In this document: positions 1-64,000 of the stretch, in pieces
How the letters are laid out: the number at the start of each line of letters is the position of its first letter
How positions within the stretch are numbered: the stretch's first letter is position 1
Assembly (NCBI RefSeq): GCF_052425735.1
Contig: NC_135760.1
Location: 21,142,001-21,206,000, forward strand
Length of the DNA stretch: 64,000 nucleotides
Origin: Oculina patagonica
Taxonomy: Eukaryota
Direction: 5' to 3'
The notes under the pieces: generated by a model
Databases searched by the model: none
Seen by the model: only the letters and a program-made list of their open reading frames with translations
Told to the model about the DNA's origin: nothing
Position numbers and translations under genes: made by a program

Positions 1-224
1 CCTTTCATATTGTGTTGAGTGTGCGTAGTATTGCAAGACGCTAGTTAGATTGTCCAACCAGGATAACTGTAATTAAAGCTTTACTAATTTCTTCACACGA
101 ATCATAAAAGTATTAACCAATGAAGTTCTCTTTCCTGAAAAAACTGCTTTCTTCGATGCTGTTTGACAAGTTATTTTGACAAGTTGTTTTGTCTCGTGTT
201 GTCTCAGACTCACAGAAACTTGCA

Positions 225-5398: not shown

Positions 5399-6388
5399 AT
5401 GGCAGTAACACACCGACTCTGCCCCAGCTCGTTGTCAATTCAGTCCGTGACACCAGCCATCTACGCGCTCGGAGTTGCATGTTGCGCCTTCAATATTCCG
5501 GTGGTCGTGTTTTCTGTGCTGGGAAACAGCTTGGTCATTTACGTGATATGGAGACACCATAGTCTACACAACAATCACAACTACCTTCTAGTGGCGATAG
5601 CAGCGACTGACGTTATCACTGGACTTGTCACGCAACCACTCAGCGTCACGGCCATCTTTCAAGAAGTTCAACAGGACATCAACTGTGGTATAAAGGACGC
5701 CCAGGCAGCTTGTAACCTTCTATGTAACATGACCTCACTCTTAACCTTGATGCTGTTGAGTTCTGAGCGAATTCTGAGCGTGTGTTTCCCCTTCTGGCAT
5801 GACACACTTGTCACGCCACGCAGACTTCTTGTACTCGTGGTTGGCATCTGGTTGTCCTCGCTGCTGCTTGTTTTGACACCATATTATCACGTTTTGAAGC
5901 CCCAGACCCGCATGCGTGTAGGAATGATGTTTCAGTCGGCAGCTTTCATCATCATCGTTATCATTTCCCTGTTCATGTATCGGATAGCGAGACGGCACGA
6001 GAATCAAATTGCGGCTCAAGTCCAGGTCGCCAATCAGGTCGAAGGACAGCAATCACTCCAGCTCACAGAAAGAAAATCGTTCAAAGCAACAGTCTTTGTT
6101 CTCGGTGCACTGATCTTGTGTCAAATCCCACTTTTTATCACCGGGTTTTTGTATAGAATAAAGGTGTTAGACGAACACGCTTTTGCATTAGCTTTGTGGC
6201 CCGTTACAGCTTTAATGCACCTGAACTCCGTCCTGAACTTTTGTATCTACAGCTGGAGAAATTCTGGCATTCGCGTTAAGATCATGCAGCTTATAAACAT
6301 GGGACAAAATAATAACGAACCAGCTCAGCCTCCTCCGACTCCGACGACTGGAAACTACGGAGTCCCGACAGCTACGACTAATTGCTGA
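5399..6388 (+). CDS. Class A orphan GPCR, paralogue 2; single coding exon
   Basis: Clear paralogue of 225-1205 (GNSLV, AIAATD, SSERI, CQIP, HLNSVLNFCIY). ATG at 5399 after acceptor tttcag| at 5381. Confidence 0.9.
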   Translation: MAVTHRLCPSSLSIQSVTPAIYALGVACCAFNIPVVVFSVLGNSLVIYVIWRHHSLHNNHNYLLVAIAATDVITGLVTQPLSVTAIFQEVQQDINCGIKDAQAACNLLCNMTSLLTLMLLSSERILSVCFPFWHDTLVTPRRLLVLVVGIWLSSLLLVLTPYYHVLKPQTRMRVGMMFQSAAFIIIVIISLFMYRIARRHENQIAAQVQVANQVEGQQSLQLTERKSFKATVFVLGALILCQIPLFITGFLYRIKVLDEHAFALALWPVTALMHLNSVLNFCIYSWRNSGIRVKIMQLINMGQNNNEPAQPPPTPTTGNYGVPTATTNC

Positions 6389-7548: not shown

Positions 7549-22121
<14,573 letters not shown>

Positions 22122-43917: not shown

Positions 43918-46900
43918 CTAGCCCCAGTTCAGTTTTTTGTATTGAAAGCTCAATTTGGACCCGTGCCCAGGCCTCAGATCATCAATTCCAACTGGAGCGG
44001 ATTTGCCATCAATGTATATCATCCAGTAGAACTTGTCAGCGGGTCTCCGATAAATACCGCAGATGGACTCGATCGATCGCCCATACGGAGTGTCAAGAGT
44101 GGTGAAATTGTAGCAGGAGTGGTTCTTCGCGGCCTCTTTCAAGATGTCATGGGCGTTTGTTCCATTGAACACTGTCACGCAGACGGGGGGTGGGGGTGTT
44201 TTTCCGTCGGAGTATTTGCTCACATTGAACTGCAGTTCAACACAAACGTTTATCATCTGTAAAAGTAATAAAAAATCCATTTTAAAAATGCTATATTCAG
44301 GAGGGAGGAAAACCGGAGAACCTTGAGAAAATCCACATATGGCACCGGGACGGAATCGAACCCGGGCCACATTGGTGGGTGGCGAGCGCACTCACCACTG
44401 CGCCATCCCTGCTCACCGAAGTGGGTGAAATTTGGGTGTTCACACGGTGTTGACGTTCGTATATCGGTCTTTCATGTGGATGCATGTGGGCCTCGAGATG
44501 TCTCCGTCATCTCTCGGCAGGGGTATAAAAGGGGAGGGGGAAAGACGTGCGAAGCCCGAAAAAGGACCGCTTTTTCTTGGTCCTTTTCCCCAATCCCCTA
44601 GCTATCGCCGTTCGCGCTCTTTTACTTCCTCTCTTGCCTTTCTACACATGTTATGTAAAATATATAAGAAACTGTTATTATTAATATGTTCTTACCGCGT
44701 TTTCTCCTCCGCCACCTAAAAAAAAAGAAATAATAAAAATTAGTGCTGGAGAACAATTAAAAAGCAAGGTTCCAAAACGTTCCAATAAATATTTCAAAGG
44801 GTTTTCGTTTTGATACCATTTAACATGAATTATAAATTCAGTTGATATATTGCCTGCGTAGCAGGCGTAAAAAAGGGAAGGGAAGAAGGGTAGGAGGATT
44901 GAGATTTACAGCAAGGCGCCCAAAAGTGTGACCACTTTTAATTTATTCACATTCTTTCGTGCAGATTTAATCTAATCAGAAGTCAACTACAAGCTATCCA
45001 CGACTTTTGATTGGATTAAATCTGCACGAAAGAATGTGAATAAATTAAAAGTGGTCACACTTTTGGGCGCCTTGCTGTAAGTTTTTAACGCAGGCTAGTT
45101 GATATAAGGTGACCCTCAAGTCACGTGTCACAAATGACACAAATTAGTGCGGACAGCAAGGAAATGAACTGCAATACGCCCAGTTATGTTGGCAAACTCG
45201 AAAAAATGATCCTCTGCTTTCAAGTTTAAATTTGATGTGGATGAACATATTCTGTCGTATTAATTTGTGATAGTTGTGCTGTCCTGTGCAATGTGGTTTA
45301 CCTGTGGTGTTCTTAGGGCAGCGCATATCTTTCAGATCGTACGGGAGCGCTCCGATCAAAGCTGGTATCACGTAGATCGTACTCAGCAGATTAATGAATG
45401 ATCCGTCAGGATTTTGACGAGATTTTAGCCAGCGCAGAGTCTTAGAACACTTGGTTTTCTTCACTCCAGCCGCTAAAAGAGCCTTGGTATGAAAAAAGAC
45501 AACACAAATTTCAGACGAGCAAAGAGATGAAATATGCAATGAGTGAAATCCTACGAACAAGGGATAACAGAAAACTCAAAACGCAAGATTTGCTTTCGTC
45601 AAAAGAAGCACGATTTGAAACCGTTTCAAAAACTATTTTCCAAGCTGTTCAAATGTACCTTGTGTGCATAAGCGTTACTTGAAAATTTTCTTCGCATATT
45701 TGAAGAATAGCGTTCGTTAGCTTCACGACAACACAAAATCAACGTTTATGCAAGCGTTGCAAACTATAACATGATTTTTTCCACATTCAAATTTTCTAGT
45801 TTGTCATCTCATAGCCAACCTGGGATTTCCTGGATGGTCAGGCCTTGATCGTCGTTATAACGTCGGCGAGACTTGACCGCGCAAATAAAATAACGAAGTC
45901 TGTAACTGAGTAAGGAAAACCAGGATGTATTCTCTTGGCTTGTCACGCAGGATTGATTGTGTTACCAGCCAAATGCAAAGCTGCAGAGTGGGGTGGTGTG
46001 TGTGTGTGTGATGGGAGGGGGGCGGCGTGGGAGGGACGGGGCGAGACATAAATATAAAGGAATTTTTTCTCACCTGAGAAGCAAGAGCGGCGGTGACCTC
46101 GTTTTGTCCAAACGTTGTGTCGTTCAGTTGCCGATTGAGAAGCTCCTTGCTCGCGATATCAATTCCAGTATTTATCTTCTTCAGAAGGGCCTTCTTCATC
46201 CCCGGCTTTTTGATTGACTTCTTGATACATTTCAACGCCAAGACATGCATAGCAAGCGTGTCCCCATAGGCGTGTTCCAGTTGATTTGGGATGCTCTTTA
46301 AGATGTCTTTCACGTAGGTCAACTTCTTCTTTCCGAGATCCTTTCCACTGCTGCAGAGAGCTAACACAGCTAAGCTGTACTGAAAAGGATGATCAAAGCC
46401 TACTTGAGGGAACTTGCTCAGTTTGTTCTTCAGACTGCTAACCAAATTGAAATCGTAGAAATTCTGAGGGTCTCGACAAGTAGCCAAGGCGCCGAGGATA
46501 TAAAGAGCCACCCTACCCCCGGACAGGGAACCGATGTCTGCATTGATGATCTCAGCATTGAGGTGATCGGATCCAGACTCCACGGAGTGACCGATCAGTC
46601 TCAGGGAGTGGTAGGCAAACGCACTCACGTGCCCGTCCCCGTAGGTGCCATTTTCGTCTTGTCGGTTCCTTAGCCATTCGGCAGCTCTGACAGCTGAGCG
46701 TGTAAGACTGGTTTGCAAAGTTCTTGGACCTGGAAAAATATCAGTTTTTACGCAATGAGCCACATTTATGTTTTAGATGAAATGGCATTTTGCAGTGTCG
46801 TTCATTGAACAGTCACGCAATGCATTTTTCTGTCACGCAACGAATATATTTGACAAGAAGAGTTACCTGACAAATCGAAAAGTTTCAATTAAGCGCAAGT

Positions 46901-48708
46901 TTTTAGGCATGATAGAAACCATTTTCTTTGTTTTCATAAATTATGGCTTTGACACGAGTTGGTGTTAATTTAAGTGGCTAGAAAAGCTGTGAAAACACAA
47001 GCCATAGACGAGAGTTTTAACAGCTTTTTGGCGTATCAAAACCTTTCAAGAGTGTCTCGGCAGAGTCTGTGGAAAACATGAAATATTTAATAAAGGCTTC
47101 TATATCCTTTACCACGAGCATTTCAAATAACACTCTTTTCTCTAATAAGCTATGGTTAGTGATTTTAACCCACTTGTAGTGCGTTTACTATCGTTTCTAT
47201 TTTATAATTTCAAAGAAATAGCTAACGGTTTTACTGTTTCCGTGGTTTTGTGGCAAACAGAGTGGAACTTTTAAGATTGGTCTTGCTTCAACAGCTGTTT
47301 TGAACTCTCCAAAACGTTCAAGAGTGTTTAAACAAGGGAAAAAAGCTTTCCATTTCGTTCATGAAGAAAAAAAGGCGAAATTAAATTTTACGTTTCAGTT
47401 AAGTCATGATGAATGGATTTAAACCAATAACAATGCGCGTTTTTTCTTCTTAATTAATAAAATTATATTTTTAAATCTTCTTAATTAATTACAAATCGGT
47501 ACTCCATGTTTCCATAGAGCTATGGAAACCGTGACTGGAACTTTTTGGATAGCTAGTCAGGCTATGGAATGACATGTTTCCTCAGGTGCTGTTTCGAGCT
47601 CTTCCTAGCCTTCACGACTGTTTACCAACTCTGTGGAAAGTTTTCTATTTTGTTTAAGAAATTAGCGCCAAAAATACAAAATTTTTATGTTTCTATAGAG
47701 TTATTGCGAATAGTTTTTCAACAACAACAATGCATTTTTATTAAATGTTTAGAAGAATGTAGGGCAACCGGGAGTGCATGGGGTGCCCGCTCGGAGCATT
47801 ACTTGCGCGCTGCTTTTCAATTTATGTGCTCGGTCGCTGTACAAACCACCTCTCTAATAGAGCTTCTTTTAAACTCTTGTAAACCAGAGAGCGCGCGCGC
47901 GAACGCACTTTGACGGTCCACTTTGTTCGAATTCTAGAAAGTCCCGGGGGGGGGGGGGACCCCCATTAATTTTGGGGGATTTTTAAGGAAAAAAATTTAT
48001 GGTTTTTTTGAAAAAAACCCCCCCCCCCCCCCTAGAAAGTGGATATCATGTAGCTAGGAATTATATATTTACTTGAGATCGAAATGATCAGATTGTAAAT
48101 TTGATGCGGAAGAAACTCGAATAGCCCCTATTAGGTGAATACGAAGTGTAACACATAGACCAACTTCCGGCCTCAATGTTGAAAGAAAATCTTCTGAAAA
48201 ATGGAGACCGAGTCCATGAACAAACAAGGAGAAAAATCAAAAGATTTTTTTTATCGCGCTGCTATAAGATAACAAAATATTTCGCATTTAGCTTTGTTTG
48301 TTTGGGTTTCGACTTTTTCAGTTCGTGGCATGCAGAAAAATTATACCCAAACATTATAATTCTGGTGTGTACGTGTTCCGGCAAGATCACGACTAAACCG
48401 CATGCTGAGCTGGAAAATAACTGGTATCCCACGATATCTTGAACGCAGAAACGCGAGCAAGAAAAGCGAATTAACTTACTAGATTCATTCCTCATTATAA
48501 TTAACGTGAATAGAAAGTAAGCTTAGGTGGGGATTTCTCCGGCTTGAAAACCAGGCCTACTTGAAATGTATACTTTTTAGAAATATTTTTACGTATCATC
48601 TGGCAATGCCAGTTATGCTAGCGCTAAATCTATTTCCTTACCACAAAATCCACTGGCCTGCGAAAACAGGGCAAGAATCACCAAAAGTGCCAACAGTTGG
48701 CAGTTCAT
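43918..48708 (-). CDS. Secreted transcobalamin/haptocorrin/intrinsic-factor-family cobalamin-binding protein, ~420 aa. Exons 48708-48642, 46729-46074, 45482-45302, 44715-44696, 44256-43918
   Basis: Signal peptide MNCQLLALLVILALFSQASG. Alpha-barrel motifs GRVALYILGALATC, FQYSLAVLALC, GDTLAMHVLALKC, TFGQNEVTAALASQAL, SFINLLSTIYVIPAL. Beta domain YGRSIESICG...YWMIYIDGKSAPVGIDDL (DUF4430-like). GT-AG phases are consistent (1263 nt). Confidence 0.88.
44300..44412 (-). mobile_element. tRNA-derived SINE (second family), internally deleted
   Basis: Minus strand gcagggatggcgcagtggtgagtgcgctcgcc...ccgggttcgattcc (A and B boxes)...tctccggttttcctccct. Confidence 0.8.
44850..45097. mobile_element. MITE (9-bp TSD GTTGATATA) containing a nested near-perfect 175-bp palindrome (44906-45080)
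   Basis: ttgcctgcgt...acgcaggcta termini; ttacagcaaggcgcccaaaagtgtgacc...ggtcacacttttgggcgccttgctgtaa. Confidence 0.85.
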
Positions 48709-49597
48709 GGTGACGTGTCGTCGTTCCAAATGATAAAATAAAAGCTTTTTCTGCAGATTCGAGTCCAAGTGACCTGTACAACAGGAAATCACATGAACGA
48801 AAGAAAGGTCGGGGTACAGGCTATCACACGATATCACGTTACTGTGAGTCCCAGTCCTTATCAATACGACCCGAAACACGAACGAGGCAGGATTAAGGTG
48901 TTTTGCTAGCTCTGGAGAAGAGATTTATTACACTCCCCGTCTTTAACATTTAATCACAGCTACAACAATAAAACAATTTAATACGCAAAGCTAGAAGGCT
49001 AGTAATACGGAAATGACAAAAGAAAATTATTTGTTTCCACGCCGTTGTCACGCAACATTACTCTCAACGCGTCACGCAGCGTTGCAGAATGTTTTTACGC
49101 ACTGGAAATTGTTTGGCCAATATTTCGGCTTTATTACAACTGAGGAAGGTCTTTGTAATAAAACCAAAGTATTGGCCAAACAATTTCCATTTTTTGTAAT
49201 TCTTGAAATAATTATGTTTTTGATTATAATATTGTTACTTTAGCGCTATATAAATGTATAAATTATTATAATTATAAAATAACATTGACTAAAGAAGAGG
49301 AGAAAGGACCAATGCTGCCCATGTATCAGTTTTGCAAGGCTTGTGCATGTTCATGTTATCTCAATGTCCTACAAGTTTTTCTAGCTCATTTGTGAACTTG
49401 AGCAAATGAAACAAGTTTTTCAGTTTAAGAGTTTGTTCTAGACCCTTGTAGAAGTATTCCGGGCATTCTCCGCGGAGCTTCTGAAGACCGATCAATGTTT
49501 GCCCATTTAATTCCGAAATATTTTTCTTTTTGCACACCTTTGCCAATCCAATTTCTTTGAGCCATTTCTTGACATCTTGATTTGTCCAGCCAGATAC
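47160..49597 (+). repeat. Segmental duplication block A; direct repeat of 61025-64000, which probably continues beyond the window
   Basis: Colinear, high identity from tgatttt(a/c)acccacttgtagtgcg through the B12-gene exon 1 and promoter to the ARM-TIR-SAM 3' end. Confidence 0.95.
47943..48031. mobile_element. polyG/polyC-ended MITE present in block A only; interior is probably poor-quality sequence
   Basis: CTAGAAAGT duplicated at 47934-47942 and 48032-48040. The empty site ttctagaaagtggatatc is at ~62301. Confidence 0.75.
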
Positions 49598-51373
49598 ATC
49601 TGTCGCTGGGAATGGGGGTGGGGGTGGGTGTGAGGCTGTAACAACACTGGCCTCACTTGGTCGAATGACTGCCTCTGGTGGCCCATCCGTCGCGTCGCCA
49701 TCTTTTCCTCTTCCTCCTAACTCCTTGATAAGTTTTCCCACAGCAGAATCAACAACATGTTTACTTTGAAAGCCAATCCATAGTTTTGTCCCCACCAGCA
49801 TTCCTAACCAGCCGTCTGCCTGGTAATTGCGTTGCATCATCAAAGGAATGATGTCTTTTCTCAGTTGATAGGCGTATTCGGCTTCTGATCGACAGTTGGG
49901 GCTTTCTTTGTAGCGTTGTGACAGGCAGACCAGCACAACAGCGGCGTCTTCGACGGCCTTGGCCATCGCTTCTAGTGTGGACCCACCCATCTGCTCCAGA
50001 TCCATCCACACTCGATACCCTTTGGCCTGAAGCTTGTTCTTGACTTCCACTAAGATTTCTTGGGAATCCCATTGGTAGCTGATCATCACGTGATTTCCAG
50101 TGGCCTCTTTAGTCTTTTCGGCATTGTTTCTTGCTGTCTTTCCTTCAATCTCCCACAATGCACCTGACGCTGCCTTTTGCACCTCCGGGTTTCCACTGTG
50201 GTGTAACTCGCGTAATGTATCCAACGCCCCTTCCTCTTGCCTAATGACATCTTTATTGAAGTCGTCAAACGCCAACATCCACAGAGCCCTTGCAGCACTT
50301 GCGCGTTCCTCGTCATCGTTTGAAGTCTTCAGAATCGACGTTAGCACACGTACCGCTCCATTTTTGCCCAGAATCTTCTTGTTGTCGTCGTTGATGGCAA
50401 GGTGGCTAAGTCCTTCTGCAAGCTCTGTCGCGGAATACCCGAGGTATCGTCGGTCTTCAGACTGACATGCTCCGTATAACTTTGTTACGATAGAGACAAG
50501 CAGGTTTTCGTCGGCTGAAATTAAATGATTGGTTTCTTCATTTACCAGGTACCCAAGGCAGAGCAAGGCTTCAGTAGCAATGTTTTCATTGTTAACCTTG
50601 GCAAAATAGAGTAATGTCTCCTCGCTGTTAGCAAACAACTCACGGTCTCTCAGCCGTCGCGAAATGTTGTACAAAATTCCGAGACATGAATCGATAAGTT
50701 CGACTGACTCGGATTCATTTTGCCAGTTTCCATTTTCCCGAAGACGTATTATATTTTCAAGACACATAGAAACTACTCCCGCTTTGGCACTCGCCGAGCA
50801 AAAGCCGTCGGTGATGTCTGAAATGTTATGAATCGTTCCGAGCACTGTTTGGAGACAATCAAAACAAGTGAAATCCCACGATTTCTCATCTGCGCTTTCA
50901 TGGTCTGATTCATCACCCATCTCGTAGTAATCGTTGAAACAATTCTGAGCGAACTTTTGCAACACCGCTGCGCCGTCGATTTCTACCACAAAGTCCACGA
51001 TTTCGGTGTTTTCTCTAGCTTCGCTATAGGATGTAGTGAACATGTTAGCAATAGCATTGCCCACCAGCTCCGAATTATTCGCGAAAGTGTTTCGTAACAC
51101 TTGCATATTCTTAAACATTGTTTGCAGATCGTCGGCTTGTTCCGGGTAGTTTATTTTGTATCTTTCAAGCGTATCTATGTGTAACACAGCCCATTCAGTG
51201 TTATCTTGAATCGAATTCGTCTCATTTCTCTCGTGCTCCCTAGGCGGCCTGTCGTGACTCAACCACTGTTCTTGAAGCACCTTTGGTTGAGCGGCATTTT
51301 GCATTGGAGATTCTGGGGAGTTGGACTGAGTGACCGCCGCGTTACCTTGCGGCTGCACCGTTTGAAGCTCCAT
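49361..51373 (-). CDS. ARM-repeat / TIR / SAM domain protein, copy 1 (670 aa, intronless, starts MELQ)
   Basis: ARM repeats (EGLSHLAINDDNKKILGKNGAV, AARALWMLAF, PEVQKAASGALWEI); TIR_2-type HVMISYQW...VWMD...AVEDA..VLVCLSQRYKESPNCRSEAEYA...IIPL; SAM VSGWTNQDVKKWLKEIGL...LNGQTL. First ATG at 51373 aligns with the copy 2 ATG. Confidence 0.92.
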   Translation of the reverse strand: MELQTVQPQGNAAVTQSNSPESPMQNAAQPKVLQEQWLSHDRPPREHERNETNSIQDNTEWAVLHIDTLERYKINYPEQADDLQTMFKNMQVLRNTFANNSELVGNAIANMFTTSYSEARENTEIVDFVVEIDGAAVLQKFAQNCFNDYYEMGDESDHESADEKSWDFTCFDCLQTVLGTIHNISDITDGFCSASAKAGVVSMCLENIIRLRENGNWQNESESVELIDSCLGILYNISRRLRDRELFANSEETLLYFAKVNNENIATEALLCLGYLVNEETNHLISADENLLVSIVTKLYGACQSEDRRYLGYSATELAEGLSHLAINDDNKKILGKNGAVRVLTSILKTSNDDEERASAARALWMLAFDDFNKDVIRQEEGALDTLRELHHSGNPEVQKAASGALWEIEGKTARNNAEKTKEATGNHVMISYQWDSQEILVEVKNKLQAKGYRVWMDLEQMGGSTLEAMAKAVEDAAVVLVCLSQRYKESPNCRSEAEYAYQLRKDIIPLMMQRNYQADGWLGMLVGTKLWIGFQSKHVVDSAVGKLIKELGGRGKDGDATDGPPEAVIRPSEASVVTASHPPPPPFPATDVSGWTNQDVKKWLKEIGLAKVCKKKNISELNGQTLIGLQKLRGECPEYFYKGLEQTLKLKNLFHLLKFTNELEKLVGH

Positions 51374-51682
51374 ATTGATTGAACTTGCTAGATAACTGTG
51401 CGGCCGCACAAACGATACGATATTTCTTGAACGCTGTCGCAGTTGCTGTATGCGGAACTGAATTGGGTTGTTATCGAAGACACTACTCGCCTTGATTTCA
51501 GTCAGCAACAAATTTAGCAGAGATCGTCACGCGAACACAACGTCCCGGGTTTATACTTAAAATACGGTGTGTAGTTGAGAATGTAGTTTTTCCGTTAGCT
51601 ACATGTGGAAAACAAACAGAATATTTTCCTTTTCCAGGCGAAATCAGTCATTTAGCATGTAGATTTCTAGGCGGTGACCCAG

Positions 51683-51690
51683 TGACGTCA
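51683..51690. promoter_or_regulatory. CRE/ATF palindrome TGACGTCA upstream of copy 1, also present at 57718-57725 upstream of copy 2
   Basis: Exact palindrome retained in both promoters; function not shown. Confidence 0.4.
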
Positions 51691-52559
51691 ACGTAAATTT
51701 GAGGTTGATTTCCACTGTCGCGTAAATATTTACGTATGTGAAACGTGCGTTTCCATGTGTTTAACTCAACAATAAATCATCGCTTAGACCATAGAGCAAA
51801 ATAGAATTGCTGCTCAGTTAGAAATAACCAGTACGAGATATAAATGAAAAAGTCACGTTATATTTTATGAGTTTTAAAAGTAGCACGAAAACAACTCTGA
51901 TATCTCTACCTTCAAAGCCTTCAAAAGCGATCAAAGTGCCTTTGACCTTTAATACTTACGGCAGAGTATCGTATATCGCATGCACACTTTAAATAACACA
52001 CTTCTTGTTGAACAGCAACAAAAGGAAACATGAACGCTATATCGCTACTGGGTATGTCTAAAAGCCTTAGGCTTTCTTGTTAGCCAAAAGAGTGGTTAAC
52101 CATTAACCACCCGGTTTCAATCTACTCAGTAGTTTCTTGTTACTTTTTACGCGACAGTGGAAATTTGCCAACGTACGTCTTTAAACGCGTACGTATAACG
52201 CACGTAATTTTAATCCCTCAAGTGGTTAGTAATTTAAAACATTTCCTCCGTTCCATTCCCCATTCCCCTTCCCCTATTGAAGTAAAAGGGGTGATAAAAG
52301 ATGACCAGTTTTAAGCCAATCAACATGCGTGACCTTCAATGCCCTACCGACAAAAAAAAAACGACGACAAAAAAAATAGCCGAAGGTAGATTATGAACCG
52401 GGGGGGGGGCACCAGACCCCCACCCGTTTCTTTTTCACGTGTGTTGAACGTACGTAAATGGCTGCCATCCTGAACTTTGGCGCCAAAAAGCAAGGAGATC
52501 GCGGATAATTTGATGTGCCAGCCGCCAAAGTAAATGGCACCCGTTGCATAAAGAGAGTT

Positions 52560-52850
52560 TGTTTAAACCCGTTATCAAGTGGGTGAATACCACACGCTAG
52601 AAAATGAAATGCGTGAAAATGACCACGAGTCATTTGATAAATACTTCCGGATGACGCTTCAGGTATTATTGGACCACTTCCTTTCTCTTATGGGGCCGAT
52701 ATCGCAATGCTGCGATCGAAGAGTCGTGAACCTATCAGTCCTGCTAAACGTCTTGCCGTTACTTTACGTTTCTTAGCTACCAGTCATTCCCTCAGACTAT
52801 ATCAATAAGGTTTAGTCAGAATTAGTCATGGCCGTCTTTGGTATTCTATC
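52560..52850 (+). pseudogene. Degenerate PIF/Harbinger (HARBI1-like) transposase fragment
   Basis: Frameshifted translation GEYHTLENEMRENDHESFDKYFRMT...REPISPAKRLAVTLRFLAT matches the Harbinger N-terminal FRM...ISP.ERL.VTLRFLATG pattern. Confidence 0.75.
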
Positions 52851-52869
52851 ACAGCTATACCAATAACGT

Positions 52870-53370
52870 TAAAGAAATTATTATAGCATAAACGTAAACA
52901 AGATTGACCAATGAACAATTTGAGGTCATGGTGACGTCAAAATCTGTTTCCATGGCAACGTCACGAGGTTAAAGATACCCTATTTTGGATCTTTCTAGGC
53001 TAATAACTCAAAAACTACCCGGTGAAAGTTCTTCTTTTTCACTATTTTTATCCAACCATCAAAATAAACATTTTTGCAAATTTTTAAAGAATTCTGTCAA
53101 AACGATTCGGAGCATAAATTTAAGGTGGCTCTGCACATTTCTCCTGTCTGACAGAATTTTTTTAAAAATTGCCAGATCGTTTCTCTTGTCCTTTAGACAA
53201 AAAAACAAAAACTTTTACCGTCTACTGAGTTTTAGAGTAATTAGCCTCAAACAGTCAAAATTAAGCTATCTTTGACCACTTTTGTAGCTGCCATGGCAAC
53301 GAATTTTGACGTCACAGTAACTCCAATTTGTTTAGTAATAAGATCTTTACAAGGATGTTCTGAAACTTAT
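52870..53370. mobile_element. MITE-like element with imperfect inverted arms carrying X-box and CRE motifs
   Basis: aacaatttgaggtcatggtgacgtcaaaat...ccatggca mirrors tgccatggcaacgaattttgacgtcac...aatttgttt. Confidence 0.55.
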
Positions 53371-54146
53371 ACATTTTACGCGTGCAATTACGTGTGTTGA
53401 TCTGACTTAACGTTGTCAATTTCGAATGCCATGTTTATTTCTAGGTATTTACGTACGTTACACGCACGTATACGCACTGAGCGATCGTGAGGGTTTTCGC
53501 ATTTTTTTCGCGGTTGTCTGCGGTTACGCAGCGATTTACTGATCATACTTTTGGATTTTATCACTTGACACCACTTGCCATGTCGACGCCATTTTGTTTT
53601 AATCGCCGTCGACATATTCAGATGTAGAAGCACTTTTTATAGATGAAGTTCGAAAATTTTCAGCAATATGACCCCGCGGCCAGGGTTCGAACCCGGACCG
53701 CTCGATCCGGAGTCCGGTGCACTTACCATTAAATATTGCCGCGAACTATGTACTGAGACAATGTGTATCTACGTTGTAATTCACTTAAAAGTCCATTTTC
53801 AAATATGTTTTTTGCATGTCACAGTTTACTTGAAATAGGGCAAGGCACTTTACTCTTAATGTGCCTCTCTCCACGGCCACCCAGGTGTAGAAATAGGCAC
53901 CGGGGCGCGGCGACATAATGCTGGGGAGTATCCTGCGATGGATTAACATCCCATTCAGGGTGGAGTAGAAATATTCCTAGCCGGGATAAGCTCCGGCAAG
54001 TATGGGCCGCATGGCTCGAGGCTTCCCTATTACGGGGTGTCACAACCTTATCAACCAGAAACCAATATTGGAAACCAAAAACCTTTTTTCGTCCCCGCCT
54101 TTCCGCCTCCCCCTCCTTCTTTACAATCTAGGTAGTTGGCTAAGTT

Positions 54147-54428
54147 GTGGGAGGCGCGGTGGCCTAATGGTTAGTGCGCCTGACTCTGGATCGAGCGGTC
54201 CGGATTCGAGCCCTGGCCGGGGTCACTGTGTTGTGTTCTTGGGCAAGACACTTTACTCTCAGAGTGCCTCTCTCCACCCAGATGTATAAATTGGTACCGG
54301 CGACATAATGCTGGGAAGGGTACCCTGCGATTGACTAGCATCCCATTCAGGGGGAGTAGAAATATTCCTAGCCGCTTAATGCTACGGAAACCGGAATAAG
54401 CTCCGGCAGTATGGGCCCCATGGCTCAA
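54147..54428 (+). mobile_element. Full-length tRNA-derived SINE. A 5'-truncated copy is at ~53835-54020; fragments at ~53670-53730, ~12145-12250 and ~33860-34010
   Basis: A box ggtggcctaatggttag, B box ggattcgagccc, conserved body tgtgttgtgttcttgggcaagacacttt...ctagcatcccattcagggggagtagaaat. Confidence 0.9.
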
Positions 54429-55652
54429 GGCTTCCCCCCTTGGCTACGCGTTGGCTACGCGTTGGCTACGCGTGGAACAAATCACTGCTCACCTGTTCCT
54501 GGACGTCTTCAACAACAAGCTTTAGTGACTTACGCAGTACATTGTAAGATCGATACGTCTGCGTTCTCAGCAGGCCAGTGGACTCCAGCAGAGAAAGCGT
54601 CCTGTACGCATGCTCAAAACCATAAGTCTTGAAGAACATGGAAAACCACGTAAGTCTCTTTTAACAATCTTTGTTTGGGTTGGGAAATTGGGAAAGAGAA
54701 GAAAAGGGAAATTTGAGAAAGAGAAAATGCAAAAGAGGGGTCAATTAGGAGAGTTTTGTATCAGCATGGTATCTGGTGATATTCCTCTCAATTTCGCAAG
54801 AAAAGTTTTAATGTTTACAAATTAAATTTCTTTATTACACCAAGAGATATACATTTTTATAAATTTTTATTGAACAACATGACTAAGCAAGACTGATACG
54901 GCAAACATAATGTTACTTAGCGACATCGCTAAAGAATGAGGGTCGAAAAAGGTCGCTGTTTCACAAACTGAAACATTTAACGCAACAAGACAACGGACAA
55001 CACCAACCTGTAGAATTTCACGACAGTAGAACTCCAGCATCTTGGGTTTGAAGCCGTTATTCGTCAAACATTGAGCACACAGCAAACGAAGCACCTTGTG
55101 AAAAGTGAAAGAAAATTAAGAAAATTAACGGCAGTAGCGTACGCGACAGGTCGAGAAGGGAAGACGGGGGGAGGGGAAACAAGCGAGGAGCGCGCGAAAA
55201 GGAAACGAATAGCACGATCCCACGTAACGTTTTCATTTCACGCTTTACTTCTTCCTTGCCCGCACCTGCTTTGAAGGGTAGGAGAGTGGTCACGAACTTG
55301 GTCAAACATTTCTATAATTATCTAAATGTGTATGTGTAGATATTCCTGCAGGAACCCTTATTTGAAACCTTGTGTATTACTTAGAGAGTCATACACAACA
55401 TTGTTGTGTTTCCTTTTATTCTCTCGGAAAATATAACGTGAAACCGACTGCAATTCTATTGCGTCGGCAGTCCAGTGACTTCAGTATCAACTTCAAGATG
55501 ACAAAGGTGAATTTACCACCTTAGCCAACCTGTGAAGCTACCATTTGAACTCCAAATGACTGGAGGCTAACACAAGCTTTTTGAATTTGCCACGGTGGCC
55601 GTCCTACTTTTATCAACCAAAAGTCGGTAATAAATTACTTTTTTCTCCAGTT

Positions 55653-56091
55653 ACTGTTTTATGGCTCTGAAACGTGGAGAGTAACAGAAACAACCTCCAA
55701 CAAACTGCAGTCCTTTGTCAACAGATGCCTGAGGTCCATCATGGGCATCCACTGGCCAGAGGTCATAACGAACGAAGAACTGTGAACAACAACTGAGCAG
55801 GAAAGGATCAACATCCAGATAATTAAGAAGGCAAAAGTGGGGTTGGATTGGGCACACCCTCAGAAAAACAAACTGCAATGTCACCAAGCAGGCACTGAGG
55901 TGGAACCCACAGGGGAAGAGGAGCCGAGGCCGTCCCAGAAACAGCTGGAGGAGGACGGTAGACGACGAGGCGAGCAAAGCAGGCTACACCTGGTGGCAGC
56001 TTGAAAGAATAGCCCAAAACAGACCACGATGGCGAGCAACAGTTCCCACGGGCATATGCTCCACTGGGAGTGAAAAAAGAAGAAGAAGAAG
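55653..56091 (+). mobile_element. 5'-truncated non-LTR retrotransposon (RTE-clade-like) 3' end
   Basis: Disrupted translation YGSETWRVT...KLQSFVNRCLRSIMGIHWPEVITNEEL*...WGWIGHTLRK...ALRWNPQGKRSRGRPRNSWRR; (GAA)n tail; ACTGTTTT repeated at both ends. Confidence 0.88.
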
Positions 56092-57322
56092 ACTGTTTTT
56101 ATTAAAATTTGTGTACAGGTAATGCATGTATAAGCGGTTTCTTTATTCCAAAGCATTTCTCTATGTAAGGGTTGATTTTGTCCGTGTCCAGTCCTTGCGC
56201 CAGTTCTGAGAAGTAAACAGAAAAGGAGAATATAATAGGGGTATAGTTATGAACAGAATCAAATACCTTGGTGCTTTTCCTTTTTTAAAAAAAAAAAAAA
56301 AATGTGCCAGTAAAGTTAGAGCAAAAGCAAATAAAAACATAGAACCATGCATTTTTCCAGGAATTATAACCATTTCGCTTTATTAACTAAGTTCTAGCCA
56401 TGTAGAAGACTATAGCTCTGATCAAATCTGCCTTATTATATTTCTGTAATACTACAATCTTGGACAATTAAAATGATAGATTAAGACCACCCCGACCTCC
56501 TTCCCACCCCCATTTCAATGTTTAAGCGTGAATTTATCATTGATTCGGGTGGAAAGGGTAGGGCCTTTTCTTTTTTATTCCGTCCAAGATTGCAGCCTTG
56601 CGTTTGTTGCTTTATTGGTGATAACAAAAAACGGAGCAGCCGGGAAAGGAATTGGGAGGAGGGCTCACAACAGTGGATAATACTGGCATCAGTGTTAACA
56701 TTGTGCCTCATTAGCATACGACTTTCGCGTAGAGAAGGCACACTGCTTTATACTAATTGTCTCTAAAACAAACACGTAGTTGTAAATTCAATTGCATAGA
56801 TAGTTATTAATATATCGCTTAAAAATCAAAAAGCTTGTGAAACTTAGTAATCGCTGAATATTTAAGCTCGTCACGAGTATTATTTGACTTTCAAAAACTG
56901 CAACATTGCTACATGGCAAAAGCGCTAATGAACCCATACATTCTTTGTAATACTTCAAGTTATTAAACCTGGGTCACTGAAGCACGTATGCTAATGAGAC
57001 AATTATTGTAAACAAAGATTCGCCTGTCTGCATTTGAAAGGAACCCACGAACCATAAGCAAGCACAGAAGGGCGTTGGTTTGCTTTTGTCCACAAAAAGG
57101 AATATGCATTTTGAATTACAAAGTAGGAAAATGCGAGTTACAATACGGAACAACCCGGCTAAGAAAGAGATATACCATCATTTTATGGTGGGAAGGAAAC
57201 AGTTTACGTACCAAACTTCAAGGCTTACAAACGATTAGGTATTGTTTGTGAAACGTTCCAAACAATGATTGCGTGATGAGCCCAAAGAACGTTTGCGTGA
57301 CTGTCGACTCCTAGCGATAGCA

Positions 57323-57675
57323 TACCGTAAAATTCCGGTTATATTCTTGGGCTTAAACAACTTTGTAAGGGGTTTTGGGTGGGCTTATTAACGAAGGGTT
57401 ATACCCGGGAGGGGGTGGGGCGGAATAAGCGGAATAAAAAATGTTTCGAAACGAACCACGACAATGTTGATCGAAATAAGTTTTTAAGTTTAAATGTCAT
57501 AATAAAGCAACATTTAGCCCTGTTCTGTACTGTCACCCAGCAGAGGGGGGCTTATATCCGGGAGGAGGGGGGGGGGGCTTATAACCGGATGTATATTTTG
57601 TTTTCAGGTAGATGGCCCTATAAACAGGGGGCTTATAAGCAGGGGGAGGCGGCTTATAACCGGAATTTTACGGTA
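57323..57675. mobile_element. TACCGTA-type MITE
   Basis: taccgtaaaattccggttata ... tataaccggaattttacggta. Confidence 0.85.
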
Positions 57676-57706
57676 TAGCATGTCACTGAACAGACTGATG
57701 CAACAG

Positions 57707-60557
57707 TAAATTTACATTGACGTCACTGGGTCGCCGCCTAGAAATCTACATGCTAAATGATTGATTTCGCCTGGAAACGGAAAATATTCGGATTGTTTTC
57801 CACCTGTAGCCGATGGAAAAACTACAATCTCAACTACACACCGTCTTTTAAACACGAGGGCGCGCTATAAAAGGGAGCTTTCCAGGGAAGCCCAGGGCTC
57901 ATTTGTAAACCCAGGATGCTGTGTTCGCGTAACGTTCTCCGCTAAATTAGTTGCCGACTGAAATCAAGGCGAGTAAATGTCTTCGATAACAACCCAACCC
58001 AGTTCCGCATCATAGCAACTGCCACCGCGTTCTAGAAACTTCATATCGCTCGTGTAGCTAAACAGTAATCTAGCCAGTTCAATCAAAATGGGTACTGGTG
58101 GATCAAAAAAGCTTCAAATTGTGCAGCCGCAAGCTGACGAGGCGGCGAATTCCAGTTCTCCAGAATCTCCAATGCAAAATCCTGTTCAACCAAATGTGCT
58201 TCAAGAACAGTGGCTGAGTCACGACAGGCCGCCTAGGGAGCACGAGAGAAATGAGACGAATTCGATTCAAGATAACACTGAATGGGATGTGTTGCACAGA
58301 GGCACGCTTGGAAGATACAAGATAAACTACCCGGAACAAGCCGGAGATCTGCAAACAATGTTTGAGAATATGCAAGTGTTACGAAACACTTTTGCGAATA
58401 ATTCACGAGGACAAGATCGGTATACGGAGCTTGTGAACGAGACTATTGATAACATGTTCAATACATCCTGTAGCGACGCTAGAGAATACACCGCAATCGT
58501 GGACTTTGTGGTGGAAATCGAAGGCGCGGCGGTCTTGCAAAAGGTCGCTCAGAATTGTTTCAACGATTACTACGAGATGGGTGATGAATCAGACGATGAA
58601 AGCACAGATGACACAGATGACGAATGGTGTGATCAATTCACTTGTATTAATTGTCTCCTAACCGTGCTAGGAACTCTTCATAACCTTTCAGACAAAACCG
58701 ATGCCTTTTGCTCGGCGAGTGCCAAAGCAGGAGTGGTTCCTTTGTGTCTTGAAAATATAATACGTCTTCGGGAAAATGGAAACTGGCAAAATGAATTCCG
58801 GTCAGTCCAACTTATCGATTCATGTCTCGGAATTTTGTACAACATTTCGCGACGGCTGAGAGACCGTGAGTTGTTTGCTAACAGCGAGGAGACATTACTC
58901 TATTTTGCCAAGGTTAACAATGAAAACATTGCTACTGAAGCCTTGTTATGCCTAGGGTACCTAGTAAATGAAGAAACCAATCATTTAATTTCAGCCGACC
59001 TTGAGCTGCTTGTGTGTATCGTAACAAAGTTATACGGAGCATGTCAGTCTGAAGACCGACGATACCTCGGATATTCCGCGACAGAGCTTGCAGAAGGACT
59101 TAGCCACCTTGCCATCAACGACGACAACAAAAAGATTCTGGGCAAAAATGGAGCGGTACATGTGCTAACGTCGATTCTGAAGACTTCAAATGATGACGAG
59201 GAACGCGCAAGTGCTGCAAGGGCTCTGTGGATGTTAGCTTTCGACGACTCCAACAAAGATGTCATAAGGAAAGAAGCAGAGGCGTTGGATATATTACGCG
59301 AGTTACACCACAGCGGAAACCCGGAGGTGCAAAAGGCAGCGGCAGGTGCATTGTGGGAGATTGAAGGAAAGACAGCAAGAATCAGTACCGAGAAGACGAA
59401 AGGGGCTACTAGGAATCACGTGATGATCAGCTACCAATGGCATTCCCAGGAAATCTTAGTAAAAGTCAAGAACAAGCTTCAGGCCAATGGATATCGAGTG
59501 TGGATGGATCTGGAGCAGATGGGTGGGTCCACACTAGACGCGATGGCCAAGGCTGTCGAAGACGCCGCTGTTGTGCTTGTCTGCGTGTCACAACGCTACA
59601 AAGAAAGTCCTAATTGTCAGTCAGAAGCCGTATATGCGCATGAACGGAGAAAAGACATCGTTCCTTTGATGATGCAACGCAATTACAAGGCGGACGGCTG
59701 GCTGGGAATAATTGTGGGGGGAAAATACTGGATTGGCTTTGAGAGTAAACATGTTGTTGATTCTGCTGTTAGAAAACTTATCAAGGAGTTAGGAGGAAGA
59801 GGAAAAGATGGCGACGCGACGGATGGGCCACCAGAGGCAGTCATACGACCAAGTGAAACCAGTGTTCTAGGAGCCCCACCCCCAGCGACGGATGTCTCTG
59901 GCTGGACAAATCAAGATGTGAAAAAGTGGCTCACAGAAATTGGATTGGGGCACGTGTGCAAAAAGAAAAACATTTCTGATTTAAATGGGCAAACATTGAT
60001 CGATCTTCAGAAGCTCCGCGGAGAATGCCCGGAATACTTCTACAAGGGTCTAGAACAAACTCTGAACCTGAATAACATGTTTCACTTGCTCAAGTTCACA
60101 AATGAGCTAGAAAAACTTCTAGGACATTGAGATAAAATGAACATGCACCAGTTTTGCAAAACTGCTACATGGCCAGCATTGCTTCTTATTCTTCTTATTA
60201 AGTCAATGTTATTTTAGTAACAATATTATAATCACATACTTGTAAATAACATAATTATTTCAAGAATTACAAAATCACTGGCAATTGTTTTGCCAATATT
60301 TTGGTTTTATTAAAAAGAACTGCCTCAGTTGTATTACAACCGAAATATCACTATCACTCTGCAACGCTGCGTGACACGTTGAGAGTAGTGTTGCGTGACA
60401 CATGGAGAGTAGTGTTACATCTTAACGGCGTAAAAAACAAAGCATTTTCTTTAGTTATGTCCGTATTTCTAGCCTTGCATATTAAATTGTTTTATTGTTG
60501 TAGCTGTGATAATAGACGCGAAGTGTAATAAATCTCTTCTCGGAAACTAGCAAAACA
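57707..60557. repeat. Inverted duplication of ~48898-51700 (whole ARM-TIR-SAM gene with promoter and 3' flank)
   Basis: Reverse-complement match from aaatttac.ttgacgtcactggg to gtgtaataaatctcttct..ctagcaaaaca. Confidence 0.93.
58088..60130 (+). CDS. ARM-repeat / TIR / SAM domain protein, copy 2 (680 aa, intronless), with N-myristoylation motif MGTGGSKK
   Basis: Open 680-aa ORF with the same ARM, TIR (SPNCQSEAVYA) and SAM motifs as copy 1. Confidence 0.95.
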   Translation: MGTGGSKKLQIVQPQADEAANSSSPESPMQNPVQPNVLQEQWLSHDRPPREHERNETNSIQDNTEWDVLHRGTLGRYKINYPEQAGDLQTMFENMQVLRNTFANNSRGQDRYTELVNETIDNMFNTSCSDAREYTAIVDFVVEIEGAAVLQKVAQNCFNDYYEMGDESDDESTDDTDDEWCDQFTCINCLLTVLGTLHNLSDKTDAFCSASAKAGVVPLCLENIIRLRENGNWQNEFRSVQLIDSCLGILYNISRRLRDRELFANSEETLLYFAKVNNENIATEALLCLGYLVNEETNHLISADLELLVCIVTKLYGACQSEDRRYLGYSATELAEGLSHLAINDDNKKILGKNGAVHVLTSILKTSNDDEERASAARALWMLAFDDSNKDVIRKEAEALDILRELHHSGNPEVQKAAAGALWEIEGKTARISTEKTKGATRNHVMISYQWHSQEILVKVKNKLQANGYRVWMDLEQMGGSTLDAMAKAVEDAAVVLVCVSQRYKESPNCQSEAVYAHERRKDIVPLMMQRNYKADGWLGIIVGGKYWIGFESKHVVDSAVRKLIKELGGRGKDGDATDGPPEAVIRPSETSVLGAPPPATDVSGWTNQDVKKWLTEIGLGHVCKKKNISDLNGQTLIDLQKLRGECPEYFYKGLEQTLNLNNMFHLLKFTNELEKLLGH

Positions 60558-61601
60558 ATAAAGGCGCAGCTCAGAGAGGAATGGGGACGAGGGCTCGCAC
60601 TATACTGTACTTTACGAAATTTTCCAGCGTTCGGCTACGAACAGTCGCCATTCATTCCTTAGATTTAAAGGGGCCGTGTCACAGCTGAGTTAAGTTTATG
60701 TGTTATTTCCGCTAGGTAATATATTCGACTTGAACTTGTGATTTTTTTGGGACGCAACGGCGTCACACAACAGGAAATTTTGCAGCAAACAATGTCATGA
60801 CGTACATGGCGTGAATGGCGTGCTGCGAGGTCAAGGCGACCGATACATTCCACATATATAGGGCCCGGATATAGGGCAATTTTTGAAACTAGCTCTGAAA
60901 AAACGGAAAAGAATTGCTATTCATAAGGCAAACGTATAAATTAGTAACAAAAACTGGGACAGGTCTGATAACTTTTACATCAGCCTTACTTTATACTATA
61001 AATGTTCGAATTAGCTACAGTAAATGATTTTCACCCACTTGTAGTGCGTTTACTATCGTTTCTATTTTATAATTTCAAAGAACATTCTAACGGTTTTACT
61101 GTTTCCGTGGTTTTGTGGCAAACTGAGTGGAACTTTTAAGATGGGTCTTGCTTCAACAGCTGTTTTGAACTCTCCAAAACTTTTGAGAGTGTTTAAACAA
61201 AGGGATAAAAGCTTTCCATTTCGTTCATGAAGGCAAAAGTCGAAATTAATTTTTACGTTTCAGTTAAGTCGTGATGAATGAATTTGAATCAATGACAATG
61301 CGTTTATCTTCTTAATTAATAAAAATATCTTTTATCTTCTTAATTAAGAAATACAAATCGGTACTCCATGTTTCCATAGAGCTATGGAAACCGTGACTGG
61401 AACTTTTTGGATAGCTAGTCAGGCTATGGAATGACATGTTTCCTCAGGTGCTGTTTCGAGCTCTTCCTAGCCTTCACGACTGTTTACCAACTCTGTGGAA
61501 AGTTTTCTATTTTGTTTAAGAAATTAGCGCCAAAAATACAAAATTTTTATGTTTCTATAGAGTTATTGCGAATAGTTTTTCAACAACAACAATGCATTTT
61601 T

Positions 61602-62106
61602 AAGCGATGACGTGTAACTGATGACGTCATCGCTTTAATGCAGGCACCCGATCGACCGGATCCGTTTAGCTCAATCGAACAGAAATCAAGTTTAACTTAA
61701 TAACAAGAAATCGCTGCGTGGAACACAAAAGCAAAATACTCCCGTGCAGTAAGAATGGGACCCTAAAATGTATAAACGAAAGAGACTAAATTTTATATGA
61801 TGGCATCTATTAGATTTGGTAGACATAGATTTCTAATTCTTAGAAGATACAGGGCCACTGTAAGCAAGAGACCGTTTGACCTTTCTCGCAGCTTAAAAGC
61901 TAGCTCCCGCGTATCGTATGTCGTTTATCGCAAGTCACGCTATAAGACCTATAATATAACGTAATCTTTGTTGAGACAACATAGGGAAATCAAAAAATAT
62001 ATATATATAACTGTAGTTGTACAATTGAGCAAATCTACGAAGAAAATGTATTTTTAACCCCTTGTGAAACGTCATCGCTTCAGCATGTATTGCATGCCGT
62101 TTATTA
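61602..62106 (+). mobile_element. Helentron/HINE (DINE-1-like) non-autonomous element present in block B only
   Basis: 5' subTIR aagcgatgacgt with adjacent inverted copy, 3' subTIR acgtcatcgctt (62069-62080), terminal hairpin gcatg-tattg-catgc, T-rich insertion site. Absent at 47740. Confidence 0.65.
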
Positions 62107-62406
62107 TTAAATGTAGAAGAATGTCGGGCAACCGGGAGTGCATGGTGTGCCCGCTCGGAGCATTACTTGCGCGCTGCTTTTCAATTTATGTGCTCGGTCG
62201 CTTTACAAACCACCTCTCTCTAATAATATAGCTTCTTTTAAACTCTAGTAGACCAGAGAGCGCGCGCGCGAACGCACTTTGACGGTCCACTTTGTTCGAA
62301 TTCTAGAAAGTGGATATCATGTAGCTAGGATTTATATATTTACTTGAGATCGAAATGATCAGATTGTAAATTTGATGCGAAAGAAACTCGAATAGCCGCT
62401 ATTATG

Positions 62407-62532
62407 ACTGACTCGTCCCCAGTCGTCTTTTATGCGAAAATTGCAAGACGCGAAGGATGAAATCCCATGATTCCCTCCGTGTTCAGCAGTCGACTCAAGA
62501 CGGACTCAAAAGACGACTGGGGACGAGTCAGG
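62407..62532. mobile_element. Short MITE with 8-bp TSD (hAT-like), block B only
   Basis: ctgactcgtccccagtcgtctttt / aaaagacgactggggacgagtcag. CTATTATG at 62399-62406 and 62533-62540. Confidence 0.85.
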
Positions 62533-63057
62533 CTATTATGATACGAAGTGTAACACATAGACCAACTTCCGGCCTCAATGTTGAAAGAAAATCTTCTGAA
62601 AAATGGAGACCGAGTCCATGAACAAACAGAAAAATCAAAAGATTTTTTCATCGCGCTGCTATAAGATAACAAAATATTTCGCATTTAGCTTTGTTTGTTT
62701 GGGTTTCGACTTTTTCAGTTCGTGGCATGCAGAAAAGTTATACCCAAACATTATTATTCTGGTGTGTACGTGTTCCGGCAAAATCACGACTAAACCGCAT
62801 GCTGAGCTGGAAAATAACTGGTATCCCACGATATCTTGAACGCAGAAACGCGAGCAAGAAAAGCGAATTAACTTACTAGATCCATTCCTTATTATAATTA
62901 ACGTGAATAGAAAGTAAGCTTAGGTGGGGATTTCTCTCGAAATCCAGGCCTACTTGAAATGTATACTTTTCAGAAATATTCTTACGTATCATTTGGCAAT
63001 GCTAGTTATGCTAGCGCTAATGAATTCATTAAATCAGTTAAAAATCTATTTCCTTAC

Positions 63058-63124
63058 CACAAAATCCACTGGCCTGCGAAAACAGGGCAAGAATCACCAA
63101 AATTGCCAACAGTTGGCAGTTCAT
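63058..63124 (-). pseudogene. Duplicated exon 1 (signal peptide) of the cobalamin-binding gene; orphan or alternative first exon
   Basis: MNCQLLAILVILALFSQASGFC|gtaagg is intact with its promoter, but the duplicated intron stops at ~61025 and has no exon 2 of its own. Confidence 0.8.
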
Positions 63125-63763
63125 GGTGACGTGTCGTCGTTTCAAATGATAAAATAAAAGCTTTTTCTGCAGATTCGAGTCCAAGTGACCTGAACAACGG
63201 GAAATCACATGAACGAAAGAAAGGTCGGGGTTACAGGGTATCACACGATATCACGTTACTGTGAGTCCCAGTCCTTATCAATACGACCCGAAACGCGAAC
63301 GAGGCAGGATTAAGGTGTTTTGCTAGCTCTGGAGAAGAGATTTATTACACTCCCCGTCTTTAACATTTAATCACAGCTACAACAATAAAACAATTTAATA
63401 CGCAAGGCTAGAAGGCTAGTAATACGGAAATGACAAAAGAGAATTATTTGTTTCCACGCCGTTGTCACGCAACATTACTCTCAACGCGTCACGCAGCGTT
63501 GCAGAATGTTTTTACGAATTACAAAAACACTGGAAATTGTTTGGCCAATATTTCGGCTTTATTACAACTAAGGAAGCTCTTTGTAATAAAACCAAAGTAT
63601 TGGCCAAACAATTTCCATTTTTTGTAATTCTTGAAATAATTATGTTATTTACAAGCATGTGATTATAATATTGTTACTAAAATAACATTGACTAAAGAAG
63701 AGGAGAAAGGACCAATGCTGCCCATGTATCAGTTTTGCAAGGCTTGTGCATGTTCATGTTATC

Positions 63764-64000
63764 TCAATGTCCTACAAGTTTTTCTAGCTCATTTGTGAAC
63801 TTGAGCAAATGAAACAAGTTTTTCAGTTTAAGAGTTTTTTCTAGACCCTTGTAGAAGTATTCCGGGCATTCTCCGCGGAGCTTCTGAAGATCGATCAATG
63901 TTTGCCCATTTAATTCCGAAATATTTTTCTTTTTGCACACCTTTGCCAATCCAATTTCTTTGAGCCATTTCTTGACATCTTGATTTGTCCAGCCAGATAC
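63764..64000 (-). CDS. ARM-TIR-SAM copy 3, C-terminal SAM part only (runs off the window)
   Basis: VSGWTNQDVKKWLKEIGLAKVC...LKFTNELEKLVGH*, nearly identical to copy 1. Confidence 0.88.
   Translation of the reverse strand, partial: VSGWTNQDVKKWLKEIGLAKVCKKKNISELNGQTLIDLQKLRGECPEYFYKGLEKTLKLKNLFHLLKFTNELEKLVGH

Follow-up and report, generated by a model that had tools for sequence, protein, structure and literature searches.

The DNA considered here is a 64,000 bp stretch of the Oculina patagonica genome (RefSeq assembly GCF_052425735.1, contig NC_135760.1, positions 21,142,001 to 21,206,000 of the forward strand), referred to throughout as the window. Its right-hand part carries three paralogous genes, designated A, B and C, of a family whose proteins combine armadillo (ARM) repeats, a TIR domain and a C-terminal SAM domain:

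49361..51373, minus strand: gene A, single-exon coding sequence (CDS), 670 aa plus stop
58088..60130, plus strand: gene B, single-exon CDS, 680 aa plus stop, beginning MGTGGSKK
63764..64000, minus strand: gene C, of which the window holds the final 78 codons and the stop

The initial annotation of this DNA described three intronless paralogues on the minus, plus and minus strands, and this was confirmed to the base, with two genes complete and C partial. A tblastn search of the 64 kb with protein B returned matches at the places of A, B and C and nowhere else. The ATG of gene A, at 51371-51373, is a start common to all paralogues, and its frame is open upstream as far as a TTG at 51511. The remainder of gene C lies beyond the window, at positions 1094-2998 of an overlapping segment, L002, which extends the window with 100% identity over 1330 overlapping bases (L002 position p corresponds to window position 62670 + p). 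The identity and architecture of these ARM-TIR-SAM genes are secure.

Pfam searches detected TIR_2 (E ~1e-22) and Arm (E ~1e-9) in both A and B. The AlphaFold2 model of full-length protein B, with a mean predicted local distance difference test score (pLDDT) of 71.6, consists of a disordered N terminus (residues 1-58), an armadillo solenoid, the TIR domain, a disordered linker (residues 575-601) and a terminal SAM fold, which are placed on the DNA as follows:

50141..51217, minus strand: gene A armadillo/HEAT-like solenoid, approximately residues 53-411, placed via alignment to B
49718..50092, minus strand: gene A TIR domain, approximately residues 428-552 (Pfam TIR_2, 429-538)
49367..49597, minus strand: gene A C-terminal SAM fold, approximately residues 593-669
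58262..59368, plus strand: gene B armadillo solenoid, residues 59-427, AlphaFold2 pLDDT mostly >90
59417..59791, plus strand: gene B TIR domain, residues 444-568
59894..60124, plus strand: gene B SAM fold, residues 603-679

In A and B the Pfam models SAM_1 and SAM_2 fall under the gathering threshold (E 0.03-0.05, over the first 23 model positions only), and SAM_3 reaches E 8.5e-4 in the Haliotis homologue, still under the Pfam cut-off. An alignment of 65 coral homologues was complemented by sub-alignments cut from it, one running from the TIR to the end and one covering the tail. Against the PDB, the tail profile matched SAM domains only, namely those of ETV6 (2e-6), sphingomyelin synthase (2.5e-4, with the match covering nearly the full length) and SARM1 SAM1 (5e-4). 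AlphaFold2 predicts five helices in the tail, the best fold match is SARM1 SAM1, and a language-model neighbour search with the tail returned mostly SAM clusters at low scores. The five-helix fold and the profile similarity to solved SAM domains identify the tail as a SAM domain, and a pattern W..DV..W ... AP(E/D)(F/Y)F is kept in full-length members sampled across phyla. The order originally claimed, ARM-TIR-SAM with a single C-terminal SAM, is borne out by Pfam, the tail profile, the full-length model and the fold match.

The TIR domain of both complete proteins retains a glutamate in the alpha-C motif, at exactly the codons first reported:

49883..49885, minus strand: codon of Glu497 of gene A, in SPNCRSE (alpha-C, catalytic-type position)
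59624..59626, plus strand: codon of Glu513 of gene B, in SPNCQSE

This Glu is invariant in 65 of 65 coral homologues, within an almost invariant motif Y-K-E-S-P-N-C-R-S-E, and the pattern Y..S..C..E is present in 135 of the 149 family representatives. When the family profile was compared with the PDB, the Glu aligned with that of WVHKE in Caenorhabditis elegans TIR-1; the BB loop aligned as well (WMDLEQMGGS with FIDVDKLYAGK), its pattern D-x-E-x-x-G-G matching that of SARM1 and TIR-1. In the TIR model the residue falls within predicted helix 73-84, which is alpha-C by order. The best Foldseek matches of the TIR are the SARM1, RPS4 and SPARTA TIRs and, among reviewed proteins, plant TNLs and SARM1. 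The Glu is thus predicted to face the pocket as in NAD+-processing TIRs, a placement made by profile alignment, predicted helix and a structural call in a preprint, and not by coordinate superposition. The call is found in Table S2 of Hurieva et al. 2026 (bioRxiv 10.64898/2026.04.20.719644), where "GLU" is called catalytic by structural alignment for four members of cluster A0A0B7AZE4_1, the proteins of P. damicornis (A0A3M6T9G3), Lingula (A0A1S3HGA3), B. lanceolatum (A0A8J9W4U4) and Phallusia (A0A6F9DHT8), each listed with an N-terminal TPR-clan domain. All four accessions are also among the family-profile matches obtained here, and the catalytic residues given in that table (575, 493 and 328) are exactly the family motif Glu. 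The proposed equivalence to the catalytic Glu of SARM1/TIR-1 therefore held up in the profile alignment, the predicted helix, the invariance of the residue and an independent structure-based survey. At position -4 to the Glu, a Trp is found in SARM1 (DWVHKE), RUN1 (RWCLDE), ROQ1 (TWCLEE) and L6, whereas the family motif SPNC(R/Q)SE has a near-invariant Asn.

A profile search of 1.84 billion cluster representatives returned 1,190 at E <1e-30, and the best 150 are all at E <1e-75, most of them collinear over the ARM core, TIR and SAM. Members, recognized by a full-length collinear match together with the motif Y..S(P/Q)(N/S)CR(S/T/A)E, occur in corals (Pocillopora, Desmophyllum, Acropora and Porites), a gastropod and a brachiopod (Haliotis and Lingula), bivalves (Pinctada, Mactra, Magallana, Pecten, Mercenaria and Sinanodonta), an annelid (Owenia), echinoderms (a crinoid, a brittle star and a sea cucumber) and chordates (amphioxus and tunicates). 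Between coral and amphioxus, identity is 65% in the TIR, 38% in the SAM and 31% in the ARM. The ARM-TIR-SAM family is thus ancient and not a coral invention, and the assembly of modules described in the initial annotation is not specific to corals: molluscs, brachiopods, annelids, echinoderms, amphioxus and tunicates share the arrangement. ARM-TIR proteins have been catalogued in the oyster (PMC4346834), in Aplysia, where 11 genes were assigned an "as of yet unknown function" (PMC9334734), and in choanoflagellates (PMC6040629); in the text and tables consulted, neither these catalogues nor the preprint mentions a SAM at the C terminus or the conserved lipidation motif described below. What is added here is the Oculina array and its structure: the locus is well resolved, and the family is known but uncharacterized.

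The same 40%-identity TIR cluster also contains, in Tables S2 and S4 of the preprint (bioRxiv 10.64898/2026.04.20.719644), proteins of green algae (Chlamydomonas reinhardtii, 690 aa, Gonium and Haematococcus) that have an N-terminal TPR-clan domain and a TIR strikingly like that of the coral. This likeness could reflect deep conservation or a transfer between algae and animals.

At least seven copies of the gene lie within approximately 82 kb, as read in the window, in L002 and in a further segment, L003, which is separated from L002 by about 35 kb. The order of the copies and their strands are as follows:

A (minus), B (plus), C (minus), D (plus, G010339), E (plus, partial within the segment read), F (plus), G (plus, G010348)

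The array adjoins a cobalamin-binding gene and lies inside or beside a long Sec1/VPS33A gene model (L002 13909-22055 and L003 1-22049). Copy C is a duplicate of A at dS 0.043, and the duplicated DNA, approximately 8 kb of gene and upstream sequence, is 94-96% identical. A 410-bp miniature inverted-repeat transposable element (MITE), at L002 3011-3419, interrupts C within its N-terminal coding region, the other 634 codons being intact; copies of this 410-bp repeat, about 90% identical, were observed at window 16286-16693, L002 3011-3419 and L003 19863-20282. The other paralogue pairs differ by dS 0.16-0.36, with dN/dS of 0.19-0.56. By domain, dN/dS is 0.24 in the TIR, 0.29 in the SAM, 0.39 in the ARM, 0.47 in the N terminus and 0.59 in the linker. 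Diversifying selection was looked for in the ARM among the paralogues, and at this coarse level there was no sign of it. In Desmophyllum pertusum, too, single-exon copies, four in number, lie at a Sec1-linked locus. In a maximum-likelihood tree, the four Desmophyllum copies form their own clade (100/100) and Oculina A-F another (99/98), with copy G outside the A-F clade and grouped with other sequences, a pattern consistent with ongoing birth and death, with gene conversion or with a combination of the two. Birth-and-death evolution, as first proposed, agrees with the tandem turnover, the copy number, the species-specific clades and the presence of a duplicate at dS 0.04 that contains a MITE. 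In amphioxus the 654-aa homologue is encoded over 11.9 kb, which marks the single-exon state of corals as derived; the form is nevertheless old, because the single-exon Desmophyllum copies occupy the same Sec1-linked locus.

In the deposited annotation of Desmophyllum, one copy is fused to VPS33A as a 1084-aa "VPS33A" with Arm and TIR_2 matches (positions 1-3203 of the Desmophyllum segment L005), probably an annotation artefact. One of the four Desmophyllum copies, at L005 15613-17693 on the minus strand, aligns in two pieces that meet at residue 147/148, the first with 42% identity, and may contain a frame shift or have a diverged N terminus. The cobalamin-binding (transcobalamin/intrinsic-factor-like) gene adjoining the Oculina array is represented by open reading frames (ORFs) at window 43918-46763 on the minus strand. 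A second gene model with Cobalamin_bind and DUF4430 matches adjoins C, at L002 1-454, so the duplicated segment may include part of the cobalamin-binding gene.

Protein B starts with an N-myristoylation consensus (MGTGGSKK; codons 58091-58108), and copies B, D, E, F and G share the start MG(A/T)GGS(K/T)K, which conforms to the consensus M-G-x-x-x-S/T and predicts a lipid anchor. Copies A and C lack the MGxGGSK motif because of an 18-bp in-frame deletion directly after the ATG. Across the family, 57 of 149 representatives begin with MG, and the N terminus MG[SCTA]xxS is found in 16 of 18 full-length members sampled across phyla. A cytosolic location, as supposed in the initial annotation, is doubtful, since most members, B included, carry this predicted myristoylation start.

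Approximately 380 bp upstream of the ATG are common to all seven copies, and the same block is found in a homologue from a different sequencing run (L001; 68% protein identity). The elements recognized upstream of A and B are the following:

51676..51691, minus strand: conserved 16-mer TTGACGTCACTGGGTC, containing the palindrome TGACGTCA, which resembles a cAMP response element, ~300 bp upstream of the A ATG
57717..57732, plus strand: the same 16-mer, TTGACGTCACTGGGTC, upstream of B
57773-57784: GGAAACGGAAAA block, after the B 16-mer
57866-57872: TATAAAA, upstream of B
57322..57676, no strand assigned: 355-bp MITE-like element bounded by perfect 22-nt terminal inverted repeats, next to the B promoter block on its upstream side

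The 16-mer occurs exactly twice in the window, upstream of A and upstream of B, where no occurrence is expected. In the RNA-library runs, contig depth over the MITE-like element is 1000-3000 as against tens elsewhere, so the element is multi-copy and possibly transcribed. The contigs from these runs over 56400-61400 are short and patchy, with 96-99% identity; they cover parts of the B CDS and also intergenic DNA, and no more than 2 reads came from a poly-A raw-read run. For these reasons expression is not claimed: transcription of these Oculina copies is plausible but weakly supported. An Rfam scan of 47000-64000 gave no match.

Elsewhere in the window, two tandem, very similar single-exon ORFs on the plus strand (189-1205 and 5333-6388; 338 and 351 aa) resemble rhodopsin-type G protein-coupled receptor paralogues, and ORFs at 26292-26870 and 27455-27910, also on the plus strand, resemble tetraspanin-like exons, with four hydrophobic stretches and a CCG motif. 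A short G+C-rich stretch at 32362-32942, unlike its surroundings, has overlapping Ala/Arg/Pro-rich ORFs on both strands; it may represent either a repeat or a promoter of the CpG-island type. A repetitive Ser-Gln-rich ORF (SQSV/SQPA) at 41112-41699 is interrupted by a run of 145 N at 41366-41510.

The best-known protein built from the same modules is SARM1/C. elegans TIR-1, an NAD+ hydrolase of the order ARM-SAM-SAM-TIR. The family shares with it the alpha-C Glu of the TIR (E642 in human SARM1), and among solved structures SARM1 is the closest relative for the TIR and the SAM alike. SARM1 is further characterized by an octamer ring driven by its SAM domains and by an allosteric NMN/NAD+ pocket in its ARM; in the present family, the SAM fold itself is supported. 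It differs in domain order, in having one SAM where SARM1 has two, and in the Asn at -4 in place of Trp. SARM1 is described as having a mitochondrial targeting sequence, whereas the N terminus of most family members has a myristoylation motif. The ARM region likewise sets the family apart: Foldseek places designed and generic armadillo proteins first, so a specifically SARM1-like ARM was not adopted. The label "permuted SARM1" is apt for function by analogy, with some support from the kinship of the TIR and SAM; in the ARM no particular kinship with SARM1 is seen, and corals carry separate SARM-like genes (PMC10236652). With plant TNL and TIR-only proteins and the bacterial Thoeris and SPARTA TIRs, the family shares the TIR fold, the alpha-C Glu and an S..C..E context like the plant SxWCLxEL, and plant TNL and SPARTA TIRs are among its top Foldseek matches, but identity is only 13-20% and the partner domains differ. 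Plant and bacterial TIR enzymes make 2' cyclic ADP-ribose (2'cADPR), 3'cADPR and other products; for the ARM-TIR-SAM family such products are putative. The oyster TIR-STING protein has a STING sensor in place of the ARM and no SAM.

On balance, it is about an even call that these genes encode a lipid-anchored, ARM-gated, SAM-clustered protein with an NAD+-processing TIR, that is, SARM1-like logic in another order. In such a protein, the lipid anchor on the disordered N terminus would hold the molecule at a membrane, the ARM solenoid of ~370 residues would bind a partner or ligand and restrain the TIR, and the SAM would mediate self-association. Clustering of the TIRs would then create composite active sites that process NAD+, leading to its depletion or to a cADPR-type signal. 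Paralogues A and C, without the lipidation motif, might act as soluble variants, and the size of the array would shift via tandem duplication, transposon hits and possibly gene conversion.

The results that weigh against this enzymatic reading come from the preprint cited above, in which Table S4 has blank entries for four isolated TIRs of the cluster expressed in E. coli (from C. reinhardtii, B. lanceolatum, spotted gar and Phallusia) in the columns Active, cADPR, 2'cADPR, 3'cADPR and NAD+ depletion (bioRxiv 10.64898/2026.04.20.719644); the screened Phallusia protein matches the family profile at E 9e-88. These negatives carry little weight, since RUN1 and RPP1, known enzymes and the survey's own positive controls, are blank in the same table, as is the known enzyme RPS4, and several products were unmeasured; the authors themselves caution on the latter point and on the use of isolated domains without native oligomerization. 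Neighbouring TIR clusters of similar sequence, from herring, coelacanth and an oyster protein of 639 aa, were active in that survey. The enzyme idea has thus already been raised and partly tested for this family, with an outcome that is negative but weak, and the NAD+ cleavage or cADPR-type signalling proposed in the initial annotation is unproven.

A more far-reaching version may be entertained tentatively, namely that the family represents a second line of TIR enzymes in animals, independent of SARM1, whose lipid-anchored members would become active only once the full-length protein clusters via its SAM, and in which release of the ARM would lead to an NAD+-derived signal or local NAD+ depletion at the membrane. 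Such a lineage would have been retained in cnidarians and on through to amphioxus and tunicates, largely lost in vertebrates and tandemly amplified in corals, and the isolated TIRs would be negative in the screen because activity needs SAM clustering of the full-length protein.

The main rival is a purely adaptor role, a possibility that is to be taken seriously even if it seems doubtful. The TIR would serve as a TIR-TIR scaffold, like those of MyD88 and TIRAP, in membrane signalling of the TLR/IL-1R type, with the ARM docking, the SAM oligomerizing and the Glu being structural or partner-binding. The blank entries in Table S4 would suit such a protein, but for the reasons given they carry little weight, and from Cnidaria to chordates the family keeps not only the Glu but the entire motif around it, whereas most TLR/IL-1R scaffold TIRs lack this residue according to the same survey (bioRxiv 10.64898/2026.04.20.719644). 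A conserved non-immune regulator, for example in neuronal, developmental or membrane-traffic functions, with the array reflecting dosage or sub-functionalization whatever the chemistry of the TIR, is unlikely. The strong conservation of the TIR between coral and amphioxus, the purifying selection seen in all domains, the ARM showing no surplus of amino-acid replacements, and the known non-immune roles of SARM1/TIR-1 are in keeping with it; immune-type families, on the other hand, typically show tandem expansion, clades specific to a species and copies hit by transposons, as here, and coral TIR families have been described as amplified by tandem duplication (PMC10236652). That the genes are silent retrocopies or decaying pseudogenes, open only through youth, is highly improbable: the single exon set against the long amphioxus gene, the MITE-split copy and the two poly-A reads would fit, but six full or long ORFs remain intact at the divergence and dN/dS given above, all seven copies and the homologue from another run have the upstream block in common, the single-exon form is old, and RNA-library contigs cover parts of the CDS.

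As things stand, the Oculina locus offers a well-annotated case of a family that has been catalogued without being explained. The conserved lipid anchor predicted at its N terminus and the C-terminal SAM provide concrete reasons why screens of isolated TIRs could miss activity, and may guide a better assay. If the TIR proves active when natively oligomerized, the family would constitute, besides SARM1, a further NAD+-signalling module that is widespread among animals. Since it occurs in reef corals and in most phyla of marine invertebrates, it would then bear on immunity, symbiosis and bleaching in corals.

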